A stretch of DNA of 63,497 bases, filler included, from Perkinsus chesapeaki ATCC PRA-425 (taxonomy: Eukaryota; Protista; Perkinsozoa): assembly GCA_013115145.1 (NCBI GenBank). It is 5 parts of 5 records of this genome, joined end to end, with 100 filler letters (N's around TTAATTAATTAA, not from the genome) between each part and the next. Parts side by side here need not be neighbours in the genome. Positions count along the whole stretch, not along the records: positions 30,244 to 44,652 come from JAAPAO010000752.1; 4 more parts are not named here. The stretch is one strand, 5' to 3'. The notes beneath the pieces were generated by a model, which saw nothing but the letters and a program-made list of their open reading frames with translations, did not search any database and was not told the DNA's origin. The translations under genes were made by a program, and so were the position numbers. Every line of letters begins with the position of its first letter. Position 1 is the stretch's first letter. Below are positions 1,994 to 44,600 of the stretch, in pieces.

Positions 1994-4826
1994 TCAGAGG
2001 CCTTTATTGTACTCCAGGTCACCATGTCCCTGCAGTTCGGGCTCGAGTGATTCCTCCGAGATGATACCTGTCTGAGGAAATGCAGCGATGCTGGCTGGCA
2101 GACCGAAACCGAATGATAGGAGAAGAACCTGAAATATAAAGAAGTACCAGAGATAAACATGACATGCCCCCAGCACTTCAGAGTCTGAATTTCAGACCCA
2201 CTATTCTCGGGCCCTAGGAAATGGATTCGGTTTTTGTTTTTTCTCCAGTGTCACTGGACCCGTGACATTTACGAAATCTCCATTGTATCTTCTCCTCAGC
2301 ATTAAGAACACATTCCTGCGAGGTTAGAAGATTTTCTGGTCACTTAGCGGTTCGTACACAACCGTTTCATGCATGGTATGTTCCATCAAAAATTATTCCG
2401 TAAGGAGACTTTCTGACTTTCCGAGTAACACATTTCTGAGGGCCTAGAAGACCCTCTGATGATCTAACAAGATAAAGCAAAAACAGTGCACTCAAAAAAT
2501 ATAATTAAAACGCTACGAACCAAGTTCTCAGATGAAGGTTCGTTAATTCGCAAATCAATCGAATTGCGATATATTCAGAACTTGACTGACAGATGAACCC
2601 CTGCAGTCCGGGAGATCTCGCCAAATGGTGCGCAATCTCACCGTTGTGGATATCGGCAATGCCAGACTCGGATACGCCATGCACATTTTCTGAATCGGCG
2701 GAAGTGTCATAAACGCTGGTGACACCCCAAAGACGGGGAACTGCAGTAAAACGCGAGAAGCCACAACCTAAAATGAGTAAATTATTCCAGTTTCGGAATT
2801 TTTCGAACCTTTACCTCCTTCAGGGCTTTCTTAGCTGCCAGTCTGCTTGTGCCCACTTCCTCGTTTGTTCCCTTCTTGAAAACGGTTATACCAGTGTCGA
2901 GCTCCGAATGGCGCATAATAAAACAGTTAGCAGATGAAGCCACCTGAGCGAGACACTTCACCAAGTCATCGCTGAGCGCCTACTTACCATTGAAGCTGGC
3001 AAACCTACCCAGCGAAGTACGACCGTCGCTCGAGCGGGAGGCAAACGCTTTTTGACAACCTGCACAATGAAATGTGGATGGAGACGATCATATAGTACGA
3101 AACAGCGCATGACAAAGAGTACTGTGCGTCTAAATTTATAAACCAAATTCGAAGAGATGTCATAATTCAACGAGTTTGGGAAGATTCTTTAAGAAATTTA
3201 TATAGAACATGTTCAGTAAAATGAAAATATGAGGACGGCCAGCCGACATTCCGATGTTCCACGAGTCAGATACAAGTTGTCGGGAATCGACAAATCTGAC
3301 AGTTCTGCTTGATGACGCTAAGTAAGTCCATGCCTTTAATTACATACCACGTTGAAGGCCACTCACCAGAAGTTGCAAAATCACTACCAATCAACTCCGA
3401 AAATGGAATCGGTGATCGCTACACCGCGCGAATCTTTCGAGTGCGCACGACGGCTTTCCGAACAGCTTACCGTCGACAATCCGTATGCAATCGCGATGGC
3501 ACTTGTCACCGCGGCGAGATAACTTTTCGTCAAGGTTGCGTCGTCCACGGGAGAGGAAGCATTTCTGTTGAAGTAGTTCACAAAGGCATTCTGCGATTGA
3601 TTGATCCAGTGCCTGTGACGCAGGTTCCATCCCCGCAAGCGACGTTTTTACCAGAATATTATTGCTGGCGTCGATTTGGCCATAACCGCGCCAACACATA
3701 CGGGACCGTTGAAAGGGACGTAACCGCTCATACGGAACGGCTGCGGTATCATCTCGCCAGTGTCCGGATGAATCTGAAAACCGGCAGATTTCACGCATGG
3801 TCTCTATAGCGCCCACACACTCGCCAGATGAGGAAGGCTGTGAAATCTAGTCATTCAACATTTGCATTTTATGCGATTCGATCGAAGACGAAACTCTGTG
3901 TTGAGTCAAGAATGTTGAGATATAATATATACCTGAATCCGCCACGACCCGTACCGTTTGAACCCTATTTGCACATCTGCAGAAAAATGTGCAAAATTTT
4001 CCCGGAAAAATTTAGCAAAGTTTCAGTTTAAAGCTGATTAACAGAAAATATAAGCAATATCTGGGAAAATGGAGAAATTTCCTGTTTTCTTTTGACTCAC
4101 CGCGGACTCCTTGAGTTTTCGAGCCTTCCAAAGCTCCTCGTCGGTGAGCTTACTCGTACCGTTATGAAAGTCATGTAATGCACTGCGAGCATCGTAGATC
4201 TCCTTTTGGCTGAGGAAAAGTCGGTATGAAATTAAATAGAGTTAATGAGCATTTAATAATCTGAACAACACCAATAAGACACCAATCGACATGGAGTGTA
4301 ATTATATCCATTTAATGAGAGGAAATATCCGATGGGGAAGATAATAAATTAGAAGAAAACCTTATATGGATTCAACGACAGATGATAACCTTTATAAATG
4401 TACAGGAAAACTATTGCCGAGGATAATACTCCAGAGTTTTCCTCTAGAAATCCTTCTCCGGCGAAATTCCTTTTTTTCACTCCGGCGAATTCCACCTCTC
4501 TTTTCCCAATCTTCCCGTCGAATCACGTACATGTCTTATATGGATTAAACAACTAATGAAAGCCTTGGCAACTTCACAGGAAATTATTGCCATCCGCTTT
4601 GTTTAGGGACTTTTCCCGTGTTCCTCAACCCCGTCGCTTGTATTTCCGCACAGAATTGCCTTTGACCAAAATTTTCCCATTATTCGAAAAATTCCGGAAT
4701 TTTTCCGATTTTCCCTCACCTGTGTAACAAGTTGGTCGGGTCGCACTGATCGAGCATCTTTCTGAATCGTCCCCAGTACGTTGTCTGATCGTAGCGATCA
4801 TCAGTCAACGAAAACGGCGGAACCAT
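1994..4826 (-). CDS. SFXN: Sideroflexin (mitochondrial tricarboxylate/serine carrier family), spliced
   Basis: Exons join to MVPPFSLTDDRYDQTTYWGRF...LWKARKLKESA|IHPDTGEMIPQPFRMSGYVPFN...IIFW|..WINQSQNAFVNYFNRNASSP...VASSANCFIMRHSELDTG...FPQTGIISEESLEPELQGHGDLEYNKGL*. The HPDTGE, WINQS-N-NRN and terminal (F/Y)NKGL motifs are family hallmarks. Confidence 0.93.
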
Positions 4827-5535
4827 GTTTTGGGATTCTTTCGTGGACATTTAAAAAATGCGCCTTCACGGGCGTCGAGCTATTAAGGTCGCATATCAAG
4901 AACTATACAGTCAACTATACTAATCGATTCCTCTTGTCAAATAGCTATAGTCCCCAAGGTCCCACTCTAGTTTGATGATTTATACGTCAGATATTAAAAT
5001 TTTAGCGACTTGCCCAACAGAAGCGAACGCACTGTACGCTCTAGAGCGATGAAGTTAATGTAGGTAAACAACAGCACGAAAATCACATTTAATGTTCTTC
5101 CCTCCACTAGAAAACAACGCTCCCTGCTGACCCAGCAAAACCTTATAGCTAATGATTGAGAATATCGATCATATCAATATATTATTATATATTATTATAC
5201 AGCTGCTTCTAAAAACCTAAAATGCACAATAGTTGCAAACTCGAGACGTTCGGAATTTTCGGGCTTCTAAATATTGCCGTAAATTTCTGCTACTTTTAAA
5301 CGCTACTTGCTATTCAGAATAGCCTATTCTCAGCCTAACTTTCTCTGTTTTTCCCGTATATTTTCAAAGTGCTTCAATCTCGGCTACTTTTCCTCAACTC
5401 GCTTCCATTTCTCATGATAGAAAGATCGTTGAATCTTTCCTGATAGGCACATTTAAACCCAAACCAACTGTGAAGTGAAACGCATCATAGAGCAGCTTTC
5501 CAAATGGGACAATTCACACAAAGAAATAAAAATAA

Positions 5536-7932
5536 TTACATCTTATCGTCGATAGTAGCAGAACCAATAGTAGTAGGCTCTCCCGGGCTGACAACTGCCC
5601 CTTGAGAAGCCGCTCGATTAGGCGTCAACTTTCCTTCTTCGATCGACTTTATGTCATCCCCGGGAAGCTCTCGGATATCCTCCGAAACATCGGGCTCGAT
5701 ACTCTTGTATCTCATAGCGGTTGGGTTGTAGCACCCCTGCCAAGCTTCCGAGTTGAAACCAAGCGACTGTCTTTCCTTGTCGATCGAAGCACAAGATTTC
5801 GCGGGCAGATACGCCGCCGCCAGAAAGTGCCTTTGCTCGAGGTAAATCCAAAATAGAATAGTACCAATAAAAAGAGGAAACATCAGCGGTGATACGACAG
5901 CACCACCTTTAATTGCGAGAACTGCAAGTACGGTAAACTCGGCGATGATCGAACAGGCAATGATGAAGCGAATTGCTCTGGACCAGAGCTGTCCGCCGGT
6001 ATCCTCACTGGGGTCATATACGCAAGCGTACTCGATTTTATAGACGATTGCGAAGGAGAAGAATGCGAAGGCCATCACGAAGCTGGTTATAGGAGACATG
6101 ACAGAATACACAAATAATATCATAAAGAACAGCATCACGGTCGATACCAACTTCGGTGATTCCAGGACTTTCGGGGCGCTCAGTGGGCTCAGGCCCAGCC
6201 AGGGACGACTACGTTCCTTCTCGGACAGATTAGGACCGAGCCAGCGCCTGAGGAGGGCGGTGGCAGCCGGGACGACGCGGATGAGTTCAAGTCCAAGGTC
6301 GAGGCCGATCTGGACGAATACAAAAGATATGAAATAGTTCGATTGCTGGGGGAGGTTTGTAGCAAGAATCGTTTGGATGGTCTCGAGAGGGCTCTCGGTG
6401 AGATCCTTAAGACTTGCTAACAAACTGCTGGCGATGGCACTTACAAAGAAGGTCTGGATTATGTAGAACAGAGCGAGCTTGCCGAAGAGGGAGGCATTCA
6501 ATGTCGCCAAAGAGATGTGACCTTCCCATTTCGAGAAAATCAATAGGAAAACCGGCAGAAGGGCGTTCAAGATCGACAATGCGATCGGTGAGATTTGCTG
6601 CAATAAAATATCCATCGGAGGCCATGCTTCTGCCGCATCCGCAAGAAATGGCAATTCTTGCTTAAGAAAAGATACCTTCGAAATAGACGCTACAAACGCC
6701 ACCGGAATCGTCCAAAATATACACAGTGCGATCGTCGCCGACAGAGATACCAGTAGACCGAGTTGCTGATGAAGATGGGGCATGCCAACATTCGACCAGT
6801 AAACCTGTTCCGGGATGGGGGTCGGCTCCGGACAGAGCTTGAACGGTTCTTCATGAAGCAGCATCTGAAGGGCCGCCATTGTAGACTGCAGCGACCGATA
6901 TGTGACAAAGGCAGCTGAGCGCACTCGGAAAGATTTTCTCGAGGTTAGCTTGTTCAACGGTATAAGCGGCACTAAACGAGACACATCCGAGATTTCAAAG
7001 CCTTTCTGAGGTTCCCCCTCATCCGCGGCCTCCTGGAACTCCTCAGCTTCTTCGATCGTCTTCGAAATACTATCATTTAATAAGGCAAGCTCTGTCTCTA
7101 GCTTCGTGATGGAGTCAACTTTCTCTTTGGAGCACAGTGAAACTCGACTCTCCTGTCTAACGCCTTTGCACTGGAGGACGTTGTAAGCGTGCTCCAGCGC
7201 GGGGACGACTTCCTCCCTTTGTTCAACTTGTTTCTCGAGCTCATCAACATCGAGCGCCACACGGACGTCGGCGATCTGGCCAGGCGAAATACACTCTAGA
7301 TACTCTCGAAGCCTCTCATTAGACCGAAGAGCCTCGGGAATGCACCGGATGAAGACGGCATAGTTAGAGACAACATCGCGGGACATGAATTCGTGCCGTT
7401 TGCGAAGATACCAGGAGAACTCTTTGTAGATTAAATAAAGAGTGGAGGGAAATATGATATAGGAAGCAATTAAAGTCGCCCACATTGCTGCACTGCCTGT
7501 CGGCAAATGACCCAAACTCCACCGGGCCAGCTCGTCCTCCGCGGAGGTCTCCTCCCCCATGTACTTGTAGACAGGGATTAGATAGATTGCATTCAGACAA
7601 CTGACAAGAGCCACTTTTGTGCCCATTCTCAGCAATCTTATAAATGCCACAGAATCGAGGCCGGCGTCGACGAAGAGCTCATCATCGGTGATCTTGAAGG
7701 CACCGGGAATCCATTGACCGAATTTGGGGTAATCTCTCGAGGACAGCAGACATTGTAGTTGTGCAATATATTTTCGAGGTTGGTAGAGCTTTGGTAGGCG
7801 TGATCGAAGTACGGTGTATACCAGAACCAGGACCGCAAAGATACCGATGTAGAGAGCGAAGGATAATAGAACGGCCTCACCGCCGACTTGATCTGTTTCG
7901 GGCGAAGGGGTCGGGGTAGGGGTGGAGGACAT
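5536..7932 (-). CDS. OSCA/TMEM63/CSC1-family mechanosensitive or stress-gated cation channel, intronless
   Basis: ~800-aa uninterrupted ORF with multiple TM segments; motifs GLDSVAFIRLLRMG, AFVTY, PEQVYWSNV, FWTIPVAFV, NLPQQSNYFISFV, DTGGQLW. Confidence 0.9.
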   Translation of the reverse strand: MSSTPTPTPSPETDQVGGEAVLLSFALYIGIFAVLVLVYTVLRSRLPKLYQPRKYIAQLQCLLSSRDYPKFGQWIPGAFKITDDELFVDAGLDSVAFIRLLRMGTKVALVSCLNAIYLIPVYKYMGEETSAEDELARWSLGHLPTGSAAMWATLIASYIIFPSTLYLIYKEFSWYLRKRHEFMSRDVVSNYAVFIRCIPEALRSNERLREYLECISPGQIADVRVALDVDELEKQVEQREEVVPALEHAYNVLQCKGVRQESRVSLCSKEKVDSITKLETELALLNDSISKTIEEAEEFQEAADEGEPQKGFEISDVSRLVPLIPLNKLTSRKSFRVRSAAFVTYRSLQSTMAALQMLLHEEPFKLCPEPTPIPEQVYWSNVGMPHLHQQLGLLVSLSATIALCIFWTIPVAFVASISKVSFLKQELPFLADAAEAWPPMDILLQQISPIALSILNALLPVFLLIFSKWEGHISLATLNASLFGKLALFYIIQTFFVSAIASSLLASLKDLTESPLETIQTILATNLPQQSNYFISFVFVQIGLDLGLELIRVVPAATALLRRWLGPNLSEKERSRPWLGLSPLSAPKVLESPKLVSTVMLFFMILFVYSVMSPITSFVMAFAFFSFAIVYKIEYACVYDPSEDTGGQLWSRAIRFIIACSIIAEFTVLAVLAIKGGAVVSPLMFPLFIGTILFWIYLEQRHFLAAAYLPAKSCASIDKERQSLGFNSEAWQGCYNPTAMRYKSIEPDVSEDIRELPGDDIKSIEEGKLTPNRAASQGAVVSPGEPTTIGSATIDDKM

Positions 7933-41615: not shown

Positions 41616-44600
41616 GCCCCACATACTGGGCTGCTCCCGTTAATGTCCTACGTTTCGATTCATTCCTAGGTGCAAGCAGCTTCGACACGGAACCGAATGA
41701 AGCCCCATCAAAAGAGCACGTAGTCGGTGCTCCGTCTGATTCATTGCCTTCGACATTTGTTGGCCAAAGACCGAAAATGACAAGACAGCTGGCACGCTAT
41801 AGTGTCTACGTCTGCGCGAATAACTACCTGGGTCTTGAGCTCTCCCTTCAAAACCCTCTTGACTGGAAAACACGCTGATACTCTCGTGAGACAGAGTGGC
41901 ATTGTCAGATTCCACCGGGTGTACTTGGCTTTGTGATTTGCTATCGCAGCCCTCATTTACCCCATCCCATTCACCGTCGAACATCATGAACCTAGTTTGA
42001 GCTGAGGTCATTGCTTCAGGTGAGAGGCTATCGATCCAAAAGTTCCGAAGCTTGCTGATTGCACATTCGTATCGAATGCGTAGTCGAATCCAACCTTGAG
42101 AAGGTCCTTACAGTTCACAGGCGCGAGCGAGTAATCCGGAACTGCGCCGCAAGCCATGCCCAACTCTATTTCTCTCGGGCTTGCACGGCGCACGGTGGCG
42201 CCGAAAATTAGAATGCCCCGAGGCAAATACCGATTGTAGAGCCCAACGAGAGAAGTCTATCTGTGAAGAGATTATTCTGGTAATCGTTTTCAGTAGCTCA
42301 AAAGACGTCTCCAAAGATTCCGTAGTAAGTATCGAGACTGCGAAGCTCGCAGTAAACCCTTCCTACTCAACGCAACCACTCCACGCCGTTTAAAAGTAAA
42401 ATATTCACTGTTATTTACTATATCAACGATATAATATCATTCACTGTCGGATATCGCTGGTGTCGACATACTCAGACCCTGTTTTTCCGGACAAACACTG
42501 TGAGGCTGAGCTCAGGTCGACTTGGGGAGATCTTACGACTGCCTTGCGCTTCCGCTTCGAGCACGGAGGGGTGAGGTTACCAGCAGCTTCAGAGACATCA
42601 TTCAAGGAATATTGCCAATTCCACAACGCAATTTGCTTCATCAAGTCGGATTTCAGCTGAGATCGTCTCACCACAGTATTAACCGCCGAGTGAATCCGCT
42701 CAGATAACTCCTCAGTCAGCAAACCCAATCCCTGAGTACTATGTGGCAAGTACAGCTCCACTCCATGAGCAACGAGGAGGTGGATAACCAAACTCGGGTT
42801 GAACCCTCCAGAGAGATAAGTATTTTTAAAACGGTCAATTTCCTCTCGCAATTTTTCAACCGAGTTGAGAGCCAACAGGGATCGCATCACCGACCTTGCC
42901 GAACGGAAGACCTTACAAGCATCCTCGCCCTTCTCAAATGCGGCTAAAGACTGCTCAATTTCGTCGACCTTCTCTAAGATAATCCGGCAGTCTTTTCCGT
43001 TGTAGGATAGAATGTTAGTCTTTGATAAAGTGCTTCCCACGATGGGCTTAGTGGGGTTTACATGGAGCATTTCAGAAAGGAGGCTCTCTAGCTGGTACCT
43101 GCAAACTCCAGATCTCAGCATTTCGTCAAAGACATTCCTCGTGATACCCATCAGAATGTGCAGCCAGGGAAGCAGAAGGGAGTCCCGAGGAACGCGAGGA
43201 AGGAACTTCTGCCCGTTAACATGGGCAGGAGGTCGCTTCATTCTCACGCGTTTCTCCTCATATTCTTTCACATAATCTGCAGCCTTATCCCACCGATCTT
43301 CGGCCGGATCGACTGCGAAAACATTCCTGCCTCGATTTTTCTTCTCCACAGTACAGCACAGCCAACAGGCATTAGATGATGTACCAGCTGGAAACTGCAT
43401 CTGCTTGGTATCACAGCTGTAGAGTAGATGGAAGTTCTCCTCGAGTGGCCTCAACTCATTTATTAACTCTTCGGTAATATTCCTAGAGTCTTTTCGGCCA
43501 TCCAATAATACCAGACATCCATGCCCACCCGCTTTCCCGTAGGGACGTACTACGACCTTATTAGTACCACCACCAAAGTCTATTCGAACCACAAGATGTT
43601 GAACGGTCGCTGGAGTACCTCTGCTACTACTAGGAGGACTGAGTGGTAGGTCAAAGTGGCAGCAAACAAACTTGAGTATGTCTTTGGCCACCACATAGTC
43701 ACCTCGTAGGACGAAGTTTTCTTGTAGTCTGCCAAGGACGCTCGGATGACTGACCTCTGTGGAAAAACTGAGATTTTTGAATCTCGATTGACACTGCACG
43801 CCAGTTTCCCCAGCTTTCGCTGAGAAAGATCAAGAGACGAAGCGTATGACTTCACTCTAGACAAGCCAACGGTCTCCGGTATACTTGAGTGGTTGGCAGA
43901 CTCCTGTGTACATTTTAGCAAGTGGAGTACACCCTGCTCCTCGGCAAGACGCTCGAAGTATCTCGCCTTGTCGTACTGGTTCAAAAACTTTATCCCACTG
44001 AATTCCTTCGCTATCTCCGATCCCGGTGGCAGACTAACGGCTTCCAAGTCAGCCTTGATACGACCCGCGCCTTTCCTTCTCCTCTTCGGCCCTCCCACCA
44101 GCACTCGAGGAGGATTCCTCCACGCGTAAGGCACGAATCCTCTGGGAACAAATTTGTTCATCCAAGCTGTGGTGCCTTTACTTAGCTCGATGGAACATGT
44201 AGGACATAGGCCCCAATCCTCGAATGACTTGGGGGAAATGCCGATAACATCCCTAATTAGCGTTGCTGACGATGCTGCTGGTCGGCAGGAGGATGTGGCG
44301 TGGCCACAGAGATAGCACGTGTGACGCTTAGACCTTATCGATCAATTCGCTCGAAGCAAACGACTGATCGAGCTACGAGAAATCGCGAAGGCGAGGGTGG
44401 TTCAATGCTAATTTGGCCTTATCAAGTGCGCAAGACAACTACGGAATCTTTGGAGACGTCTTTTGAGCTACTGAAAACGAATACCAGAATAATCTCTTCA
44501 CAGATAGACTCCTCTCGTTGGGCTCTACAATCGGTATTTGCCTCGGGGCATTCTAATTTTCGGCGCCACCGTGCGGCGTACCCGAGGGATAGAAGTCTCC

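Follow-up and report, generated by a model that had tools for sequence, protein, structure and literature searches.

A recently inserted, defective transposon of Perkinsus chesapeaki with a probable RAG1-Transib-Chapaev transposase

Perkinsus chesapeaki is a parasite of clams. Here we describe a transposon that lies at positions 42191-44573 of a 63,497-nucleotide stretch of its DNA (hereafter the window; strain ATCC PRA-425, assembly GCA_013115145.1), in the part taken from record JAAPAO010000752.1. The element is 2,383 bp long, ends in long terminal inverted repeats (TIRs), is flanked by a 5-bp target-site duplication (TSD) and carries one gene, for a transposase that resembles RAG1 (Table 1). 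RAG1 is the antibody-gene recombinase of vertebrates, and its relatives hold a central place in research on the origin of V(D)J recombination. The account that we favor, and consider likely, is that the element, an autonomous copy by origin, inserted recently and is now defective, and that it belongs to a family of cut-and-paste DNA transposons which has so far been seen only in Perkinsus and encodes a transposase of the RAG1-Transib-Chapaev assemblage.

Results

The left and right TIRs differ at 2 of 136 positions (63 and 93 only). The window holds just two copies of the 19-nt terminus CACGGTGGCGCCGAAAATT, one per element end and in opposite orientation, whereas the expectation from 100 shuffles was 0 copies. 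Among direct repeats of more than 2 bp at the element borders, only a length of 5 fits. Repeat analysis thus bore out the initial annotation, which had reported 136-bp TIRs with 2 mismatches, a CACGGTG start and a CGGCG duplication. The terminal heptamer CACGGTG is found at both ends, and also in copies from P. olseni, and is identical at 6 of 7 positions to CACAGTG, the heptamer of the recombination signal sequence (RSS). The TIRs are symmetric over their 136 nt, with no asymmetry of the 12/23 kind, and an A-rich block follows the heptamer after only 4-5 nt. Less than 500 bp of the element is not transposase sequence, in agreement with the earlier statement that no RAG2-like partner fits inside. 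A repeat finder called the inverted repeat as 157 nt because the host DNA flanking the insertion (42170-42190 and 44574-44594) is itself partly palindromic, with ctcggg and cccgag placed around CGGCG.

Table 1 Features of the element in the window, and ends and complete copies of related Perkinsus elements
Feature	Position	Strand	Details
Transposon, whole	42191-44573		2,383 bp
TSD, left, CGGCG	42186-42190	.	same letters as 44574-44578; single copy in empty-site contigs
TIR, left, 136 nt	42191-42326	+	heptamer CACGGTG (42191-42197), then GCGCC, GAAAATT
Transposase catalytic core, frame A, 452 codons + stop	42441-43799	-	RNase H-like DDE domain with zinc-binding insertion
E367 in TEELSERIH (362-370), catalytic Glu	42699-42701	-	profile column avEsiH aligned with RAG1 GNES
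HLLVAH (340-345), H(4)H zinc ligands	42765-42782	-	H340, H345 nearly invariant; aligned with RAG1 HKTLAH
WLHILMG (212-218), LH motif	43146-43166	-	L213, H214 nearly invariant; aligned with RAG1 ALHCDIG
CWLC (145-148), C(2)C zinc ligands	43356-43367	-	aligned with RAG1 CTLC; invariant in Perkinsus family
D130 in SCDTK (YSCDTK 127-132), second catalytic Asp	43410-43412	-	profile column sgDlK aligned with RAG1 GYDEK
D74 in RIDFGGG (72-78), inferred first catalytic Asp	43578-43580	-	Perkinsus family invariant; strand end in model
Transposase N-terminal part, frame B, 210 codons	43712-44341	-	no ATG at head
Frameshift, 1 bp	~43716-43723	-	inside run AAGAAAAC; frame switch between ..ADYKK and NFVLRGDY.. 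(three-frame translation)
Basic patch PKRRRK	44072-44089	-	
CxxC pair, putative zinc finger	44306-44317 and 44195-44206	-	
TIR, right, 136 nt	44438-44573	-	ends ..CACCGTG
TSD, right, CGGCG	44574-44578	.	
P. olseni, family 1, left end	L001		flank cgacg, then CACGGTGCGCC..
P. olseni, family 1, right end	L002/L003		..CACCGTG, then flank cgacg
P. olseni, family 1, right end	L012		flank cgccg
P. olseni, family 1, left end	L005		flank cgccg
P. olseni, family 2, complete	L011:3724-6427 (JABANP010000183.1)		2,704 bp; CGCCCG both sides (6 bp)
P. chesapeaki, family 2, complete	L004:918-3559 (JAAPAO010000189.1)		2,642 bp; CGCGCCG both sides (7 bp)
P. olseni, family 2, left end	L007		flank ..cgagcg

The gene lies on the minus strand, and the seven protein motifs that had been listed in the initial annotation are all found, in order, in its 452-residue open reading frame (ORF), with NGKDCR at residues 267-272. 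The same annotation had described one internal transposase. There is indeed a single gene, but not a single intact ORF, since a frameshift separates the catalytic core from the N-terminal part and a start codon is lacking. The N-terminal part, which matched no Pfam family, also holds a helical region, and its two CxxC motifs are 33 residues apart. No ATG precedes the first zinc-finger cysteine in the window copy, which reads ..IRSKRHTCYLCG after a stop, whereas P. olseni homologues start with MSQKNTCYLCG or MPQANTCYLCG. A P. olseni homologue crosses the region of the frameshift in a single frame (...SDYQTKFCIKDN...). Among the Logan contigs of two samples (four public DNA runs), a 2,035-nt contig assembled independently in each run equals 42433-44467 without a difference or gap, and errors of this assembly therefore do not explain the gene defects. 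The window copy is unable to make the full-length protein and is non-autonomous through its mutations. The deposited gene model of the locus (P0001), which comes from the same contig of 14,409 bp, removes the stretch with the frameshift as an intron. We rejected an intron at this place, because the residues that would be spliced out stay in frame in the intact P. olseni ORF; the intron of P0001 is an annotation artefact.

All four DNA runs also yielded a contig of the empty site, in which 42185 is joined straight to 44574 with a single CGGCG. These contigs skip 2,388 bases, that is, the 2,383-bp element and one 5-bp copy of the repeat, and the 5 letters fit on either side of the joint. Other haplotypes or cells of the same isolates thus lack the insertion. 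Since the empty allele has one CGGCG, the 5-bp duplication is genuine: the element duplicated 5 bp when it inserted into a CGGCG site. Read depths of the empty-site contig (70, 173, 195 and 134 in the four runs) and of the element interior (51, 144, 177 and 117) were similar. The insertion is polymorphic and therefore recent, as the initial annotation had proposed. The element interior behaves as single-copy at 90% likeness or more in the DNA-run contigs. The ends recur in other contigs, for example in one of 343 nt that covers 42183-42449 with 21 differences, so related copies or derivatives exist elsewhere in the genome. A second empty-site haplotype was present in all four runs; here 19 letters (GAGAGACCAGGTTCCGGCA) replace cttgca directly to the left of the CGGCG target (42179-42185 / 44574), and the locus therefore has at least three haplotypes. 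We rejected an excision footprint as the source of this form, because the duplication does not flank it on both sides; to all appearance it is an ordinary haplotype that has diverged.

We then compared the protein with known transposases. A Perkinsus-only profile found, at E-values of 1e-7 to 1e-4, proteins of non-Perkinsus origin in metagenome and run assemblies, and alignment of the Perkinsus set with the non-Perkinsus set (hhalign) gave 99.8% probability (E 9.4e-29, 347 columns). On its own, the non-Perkinsus set matched BbRAG1L (E 6.5e-7) and zebrafish RAG1 (E 8.5e-7). The combined 29-sequence profile matched zebrafish RAG1 at 2.2e-10, BbRAG1L at 9.8e-9, mouse RAG1 at about 3e-4 and HzTransib at 0.36. 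Adding the Perkinsus sequences thus strengthened the RAG1 match, and RAG1, RAG1L and HzTransib were all that the combined profile matched among 177,635 sequences of the PDB. The motifs fall in register between the profile and RAG1 (sgDlK with GYDEK, CxxC with CTLC, LH with ALHCDIG, GN with NGN, HxxxxH with HKTLAH and avEsiH with GNES). In mouse RAG1 we take D708, C727/C730, H937/H942 and E962 to be the counterparts of D130, C145/C148, H340/H345 and E367 of the window protein. For the first aspartate, D74 is probably equivalent to RAG1 D600, judging from the DxGG..K motif common to the 29-sequence alignment and from the strand position in the structural model rather than from a HMMER alignment.

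Predicted structure pointed in the same direction. An AlphaFold2 model of the core, built from the 29-sequence alignment, had a mean predicted local distance difference test (pLDDT) score of 82.5 and a predicted template modeling (pTM) score of 0.79; a model from 5 sequences (pLDDT 53) was unusable. In a Foldseek search of the PDB, ranks 1-45 were all RAG1, HzTransib or BbRAGL (E 1e-8 to 5e-5), followed by the P element transposase (E 7e-5). VIA-align gave Z 22.7 with the HzTransib hairpin-forming complex (345 residues aligned), 22.1 with RAG1 residues 479-1008 (370 residues), 18.2 with BbRAGL, 14.8 with the P element, 10.9 with Hermes and about 7 with retroviral integrases. With 345-374 residues aligned to RAG1 and Transib, the match of the model spans the whole core and extends beyond the RNase H fold alone. 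The predicted fold is the one seen in HzTransib and the RAG1 core: a C2/H2 zinc module is inserted in the RNase H domain, which is accompanied by a pre-RNase H domain and C-terminal helical domains. The order of motifs is likewise common with the RAG1 core (D, D-x-K, CxxC, LH, G-N/K, HxxxxH, E). The initial annotation had placed the protein in the RAG1 superfamily and had named a structure search as a way to check this; RAG1, HzTransib and BbRAGL came out on top of that search, not an unrelated DDE family, and the profile match to RAG1 agrees. AlphaFold DB clusters of the same fold include accessions that we take to be proteins of Naegleria, a red alga, fungi and many animals.

By sequence, the nearest relatives are probably animal proteins. 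The look-alike clusters of the non-Perkinsus relatives are mostly from Cnidaria and Porifera, and one relative lies on a 2-Mb contig (L013, ENA ERZ25766962) next to a PF26100 (RAG1_RNase_H) gene with homologues in the sponge Oopsacas minuta. This contig probably derives from a glass sponge close to Oopsacas, to judge by its Transib homologues. The relative itself (L013:4425-6627) is a broken transposase with IDGGGGS.K, CDTK, C.FC, VLH, AGKD, HCLLAH and TEEQIESCH, and the canonical PF26100 Transib gene (L013:11407-12627) is 5 kb from it. Another non-Perkinsus relative, P0027, matched Pfam DUF1280 (PF06918) at E 9e-16 and, weakly, zf-AD (E 0.003). DUF1280 has been equated with Chapaev transposases and clustered with RAG1 (PMC3985635). 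The Chapaev-like character that had been ascribed to the motifs of the window protein holds in so far as C(2)C, LH and H(4)H are present and a DUF1280 protein is among the nearest non-Perkinsus relatives. No Perkinsus protein matched DUF1280 at E <= 1, and no member of the family matched PF26100. Searches among 1.8 billion representatives returned no non-Perkinsus relative of more than 30% identity. A word-indexed search with the 29-sequence alignment brought back Perkinsus sequences only.

For comparison with canonical Transib we made a profile of 15 sponge Transib transposases (PF26100), to which the non-Perkinsus relatives aligned at E 6e-10 (96.6%). In a maximum-likelihood tree of 29 cores (433 columns), with an arbitrary root on the sponge Transibs, the two Perkinsus families described below formed one clade (support 99/97), and a branch supported at 100/100 lay between this clade and the sponge Transibs. 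The DUF1280 protein was the first branch on the non-Transib side, and the Perkinsus clade fell within that side. Judged by sequence, then, the Perkinsus transposase appears to belong to the non-Transib branch, among probably animal proteins of which one has DUF1280, with canonical Transib more distant.

The window protein is annotated in Perkinsus chesapeaki, as expected from the alveolate host named at the outset, and has relatives of 50-57% identity in both P. chesapeaki and P. olseni. The Perkinsus family profile gave 44 matches in a search of 1.84 billion representatives. A second family (P0014, P0019 and P0055), about 20% identical to the first, is also present in both species. A family-1 copy of P. 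olseni (L001) has an intact ORF of about 627 residues (5781-7661) and has lost its right TIR after about 75 nt. In family 2, the complete P. olseni copy (L011) has perfect 127-nt TIRs that start with CACGGTGGGG and an intact 742-residue ORF (4001-6229), and the P. chesapeaki copy (L004) has 141-nt TIRs with 2 mismatches and an ORF in two pieces. The L011 element looks active, and intact reading frames suggest that the relatives on L011 and L001 are likely to be so.

These copies allowed us to compare target sites. All five independent family-1 insertion sites, that of the window included, read CGNCG (CGGCG once, CGACG and CGCCG twice each), and CG adjoins each of the 11 element ends examined; the GC content of the contig is 48%. 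The simplest description is that a target CG-N(1-3)-CG is duplicated whole, as 5 bp in family 1 and as 6-7 bp in family 2, where each length comes from one copy without an empty site. On L004 the 5-mers adjoining the two ends are unequal (CGCCG and CGCGC). An empty site alone cannot tell a duplication of CG-N-CG from a CG borne by the element together with a duplication of 1-3 bp. We rejected the latter, which needs a CG in the transposon plus an extra CG outside the duplication, on both sides, in 3 of 3 complete copies; CG-N-CG is preferred as the duplicated target because one assumption suffices. As to the TSDs of other copies, which had been proposed as a check, CGNCG adjoins the ends in family 1, and repeats of 6 and 7 bp flank the sister-family copies. 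A 17-nt inverted repeat at both ends of contig L008 was considered as a third type of terminus (CACTTGC) and rejected, as L008 is an internal piece of an L007-type element. L006, L009 and L010 yielded no element ends.

Discussion

Taken together, the element combines a transposase of the branch that carries the DUF1280 marker with ends and a target (5 bp, CGNCG) like those of Transib. Chapaev elements are characterized by a 3-4 bp duplication (TWA in Chapaev3), invariable CAC...GTG termini and C(2)C, LH and H(4)H motifs (PMC4079192). The Perkinsus element shares with Chapaev and Chapaev3 these motifs around the DDE triad, the termini, the single gene and a cysteine-rich N-terminus, as well as a near relative with DUF1280. 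It differs in its longer duplication, verified by the empty site and longer still in the sister family, in the lack of a DUF1280 match of its own, in its alveolate rather than animal host and, it seems, in an N-terminus with one CxxC...CxxC module and no recognizable two-zinc Chapa domain. Transib duplications are invariably 5 bp and GC-enriched, and the CAC heptamer of Transib resembles that of the RSS (PMC1131882; PMC4840297). With Transib (HzTransib, PDB 6PQX) the element has in common the GC-rich 5-bp duplication, the CAC heptamer, one gene without a RAG2 partner and the overall fold; in contrast, the sequence match is marginal for both HzTransib and the sponge profile, PF26100 is absent, the tree clade is separate, and the TIRs are long, symmetric and near-perfect whereas Transib has a heptamer-spacer-nonamer end of about 38 bp, in some families with 12/23-like asymmetry. 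The domain order follows that of approximately residues 479-1008 of RAG1 (Z 18-22 for the RAG1 core and RAG1L), and the second Asp, CxxC, LH, HxxxxH and Glu align. Unlike RAG1 and RAG1L, the Perkinsus proteins have no RAG1 Pfam domains, NBD or RING, the element lacks asymmetric ends of the 12/23 type, and identity is about 12%. Finally, RAGL and ProtoRAG elements have convergent RAG1-like and RAG2-like genes between their TIRs, as opposed to the single gene here.

We regard membership of the RAG1-Transib-Chapaev assemblage as very probable. Several observations weigh against it or against parts of the account given at the outset. Perkinsus proteins alone matched no Pfam family, neither a single protein nor the Perkinsus-only profile matched any PDB sequence, and the Perkinsus profile aligned to the sponge Transib profile at E 0.013 with 3% probability, the motifs again being aligned. 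The link to RAG1 therefore runs through intermediate sequences and the predicted structure. DUF1280 was found in only 1 of 18 intermediates, which makes "Chapaev-like" a loose name for the branch. The tree left out RAG1, RAG1L and curated Chapaev proteins and so cannot tell an ordinary Chapaev branch from a more basal position of the Perkinsus clade. Complete copies of the sister family with 6-bp (CGCCCG) and 7-bp (CGCGCCG) repeats mean that a fixed 5-bp stagger is not clade-wide. The transposase gene was not listed for any RNA run.

Could the likeness to RAG1 reflect no more than a generic RNase H fold with an insertion domain, in a member of an unrelated DDE superfamily such as P element, hAT or MULE? 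The P element (E 7e-5 in Foldseek) and Hermes do align to the model, and some AlphaFold DB cluster matches are named "MULE" or generic transposase. However, RAG1 and Transib exceed the P element by at least 7 Z units over 345-374 residues, no other proteins of the PDB were matched by the combined profile, the zinc ligands and acidic residues are in register, and the duplication is 5 bp, not the 8 bp of hAT (PMC1131882); we consider this explanation extremely improbable. A Transib in the strict sense, that is, a fast-evolving member of the canonical clade that inherited its GC-rich 5-bp duplication and CACGGTG, would account for the verified 5-bp duplication, for the GC-rich target and CAC heptamer, which match published hallmarks of Transib (PMC1131882; PMC4840297), and for HzTransib being the top structural match. 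Against it, the Perkinsus profile is far closer to the other relatives (E 9e-29) than to Transib, the combined profile favors RAG1 over HzTransib (2e-10 vs 0.36), no member matches PF26100, a fully supported branch parts the Perkinsus clade from the sponge Transibs, and the TIRs show no 12/23-like asymmetry over 136 nt; we think a strict Transib very unlikely. The relatives and motifs of the DUF1280/Chapaev-marker kind, joined to Transib-like ends and target, would also fit a true intermediate, a sister lineage of RAG1 and Transib that keeps a state ancestral to the split of Chapaev from Transib/RAG1 and forms a group of its own. The gain in the RAG1 match on adding Perkinsus, the deep and well-supported clade with two families about 20% identical, and the apparently single N-terminal CxxC...CxxC module, as against two zinc modules in the Chapa/NZD of Chapaev and RAG1L, speak for such a lineage. 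Yet in the Transib-rooted tree the clade falls within the non-Transib side, where the DUF1280 protein is the first branch, and duplication length and termini are reported to be labile even between close relatives of Transib (bioRxiv 10.64898/2026.08.26.747230), so that these DNA characters say little about deep placement. Convergence could explain the common length of 5 bp, and repeats of 6 and 7 bp occur in the sister family. We think a true intermediate unlikely.

A different question is where the family came from. Horizontal acquisition from an animal donor, for example the mollusc host or a different marine invertebrate, rather than inheritance within alveolates, is compatible with a defective RAG1-Transib-Chapaev copy in the window. 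Such transfer is reported to be frequent for Chapaev and Transib elements (PMC4079192, PMC9435367), Perkinsus lives inside bivalves, and the nearest relatives have look-alike clusters mostly in Cnidaria and Porifera, one of them beside a Transib gene like that of Oopsacas minuta. On the other side, the clade is deep, both families are in both species and no outside relative exceeds 30% identity, so that any transfer would be old. Structural relatives are presumably present also in Naegleria, red algae and fungi. An animal source is not what we expect, and we rate its chances as low.

If, as we favor, the element is a copy of a cut-and-paste RAG1-Transib-Chapaev transposon, an intact member of the family would supply a dimeric transposase in trans, which would bind the long TIRs. 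A nick at the CAC border and attack on the opposite strand would then produce hairpinned flanks and blunt element ends, as for RAG and Transib, and integration would follow with a 5-bp stagger into GC-rich targets bounded by CpG (CGNCG). On the strength of homology to RAG1 and HzTransib, we lean towards hairpin chemistry for the Perkinsus transposase.

Relatives of RAG1 outside animals are already known: the pelagophyte Aureococcus has a RAGL, and bacteria, fungi and plants have Transib-like proteins (PMC9435367). The earlier statement that the element lies outside a mostly animal range is therefore right as to the alveolate and partly outdated as to the range, which was long mostly animal, widened in 2022 and now gains an alveolate clade. 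The RAG1-Transib-Chapaev group of transposons is present in an alveolate protist, but this is not a new category of element. In the literature searched, which did not cover Repbase, we found no mention of a Transib or Chapaev element in Perkinsus. The clade is useful for its demonstrably recent insertion, its apparently intact P. olseni copies and its mixture of a Chapaev-marker-branch transposase with Transib-type ends and target, which bears on whether the CAC heptamer and the GC-rich 5-bp duplication are ancestral traits or labile ones. For comparative biochemistry, the clade provides a small enzyme from a single gene, and an endogenous mobile element could account for haplotype differences in the polyploid genomes of Perkinsus. 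It is conceivable, though we would not assume it, that the Perkinsus elements form a separate deep lineage of the assemblage, defined by a non-Transib-branch transposase, a CAC heptamer, a GC-rich duplication and targets set by two CpG steps (CG-N1-3-CG, 5-7 bp). In that event the ancestor of the whole assemblage would already have had an RSS-like end and a GC-rich 5-bp target, and a culturable protist would provide an active relative of RAG1 encoded by one gene.

Additional observations

Deposited gene models are affected by these elements elsewhere. A P. chesapeaki model (P0045, L006:5001-7746) joins a piece of the transposase family to a serine carboxypeptidase S28 domain, and transposon fragments therefore contaminate host gene models in Perkinsus assemblies. 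The deposited model on L011 overruns the right end of its element. The family-1 copy of L001 is part of a transposon-rich region (L001:8000-13661) and has as neighbours genes with DDE_3, integrase H2C2 and reverse-transcriptase domains. In the window itself, a 65-bp palindrome at 35240-35304 (20-nt arms, 90% complementary) contains in its left arm CACGGTGGCGC, the first 11 bases of the element TIR. Its flanks, caacg and cgttg, are inverted and not direct repeats, and it may be a chance occurrence or a tiny remnant of an element.

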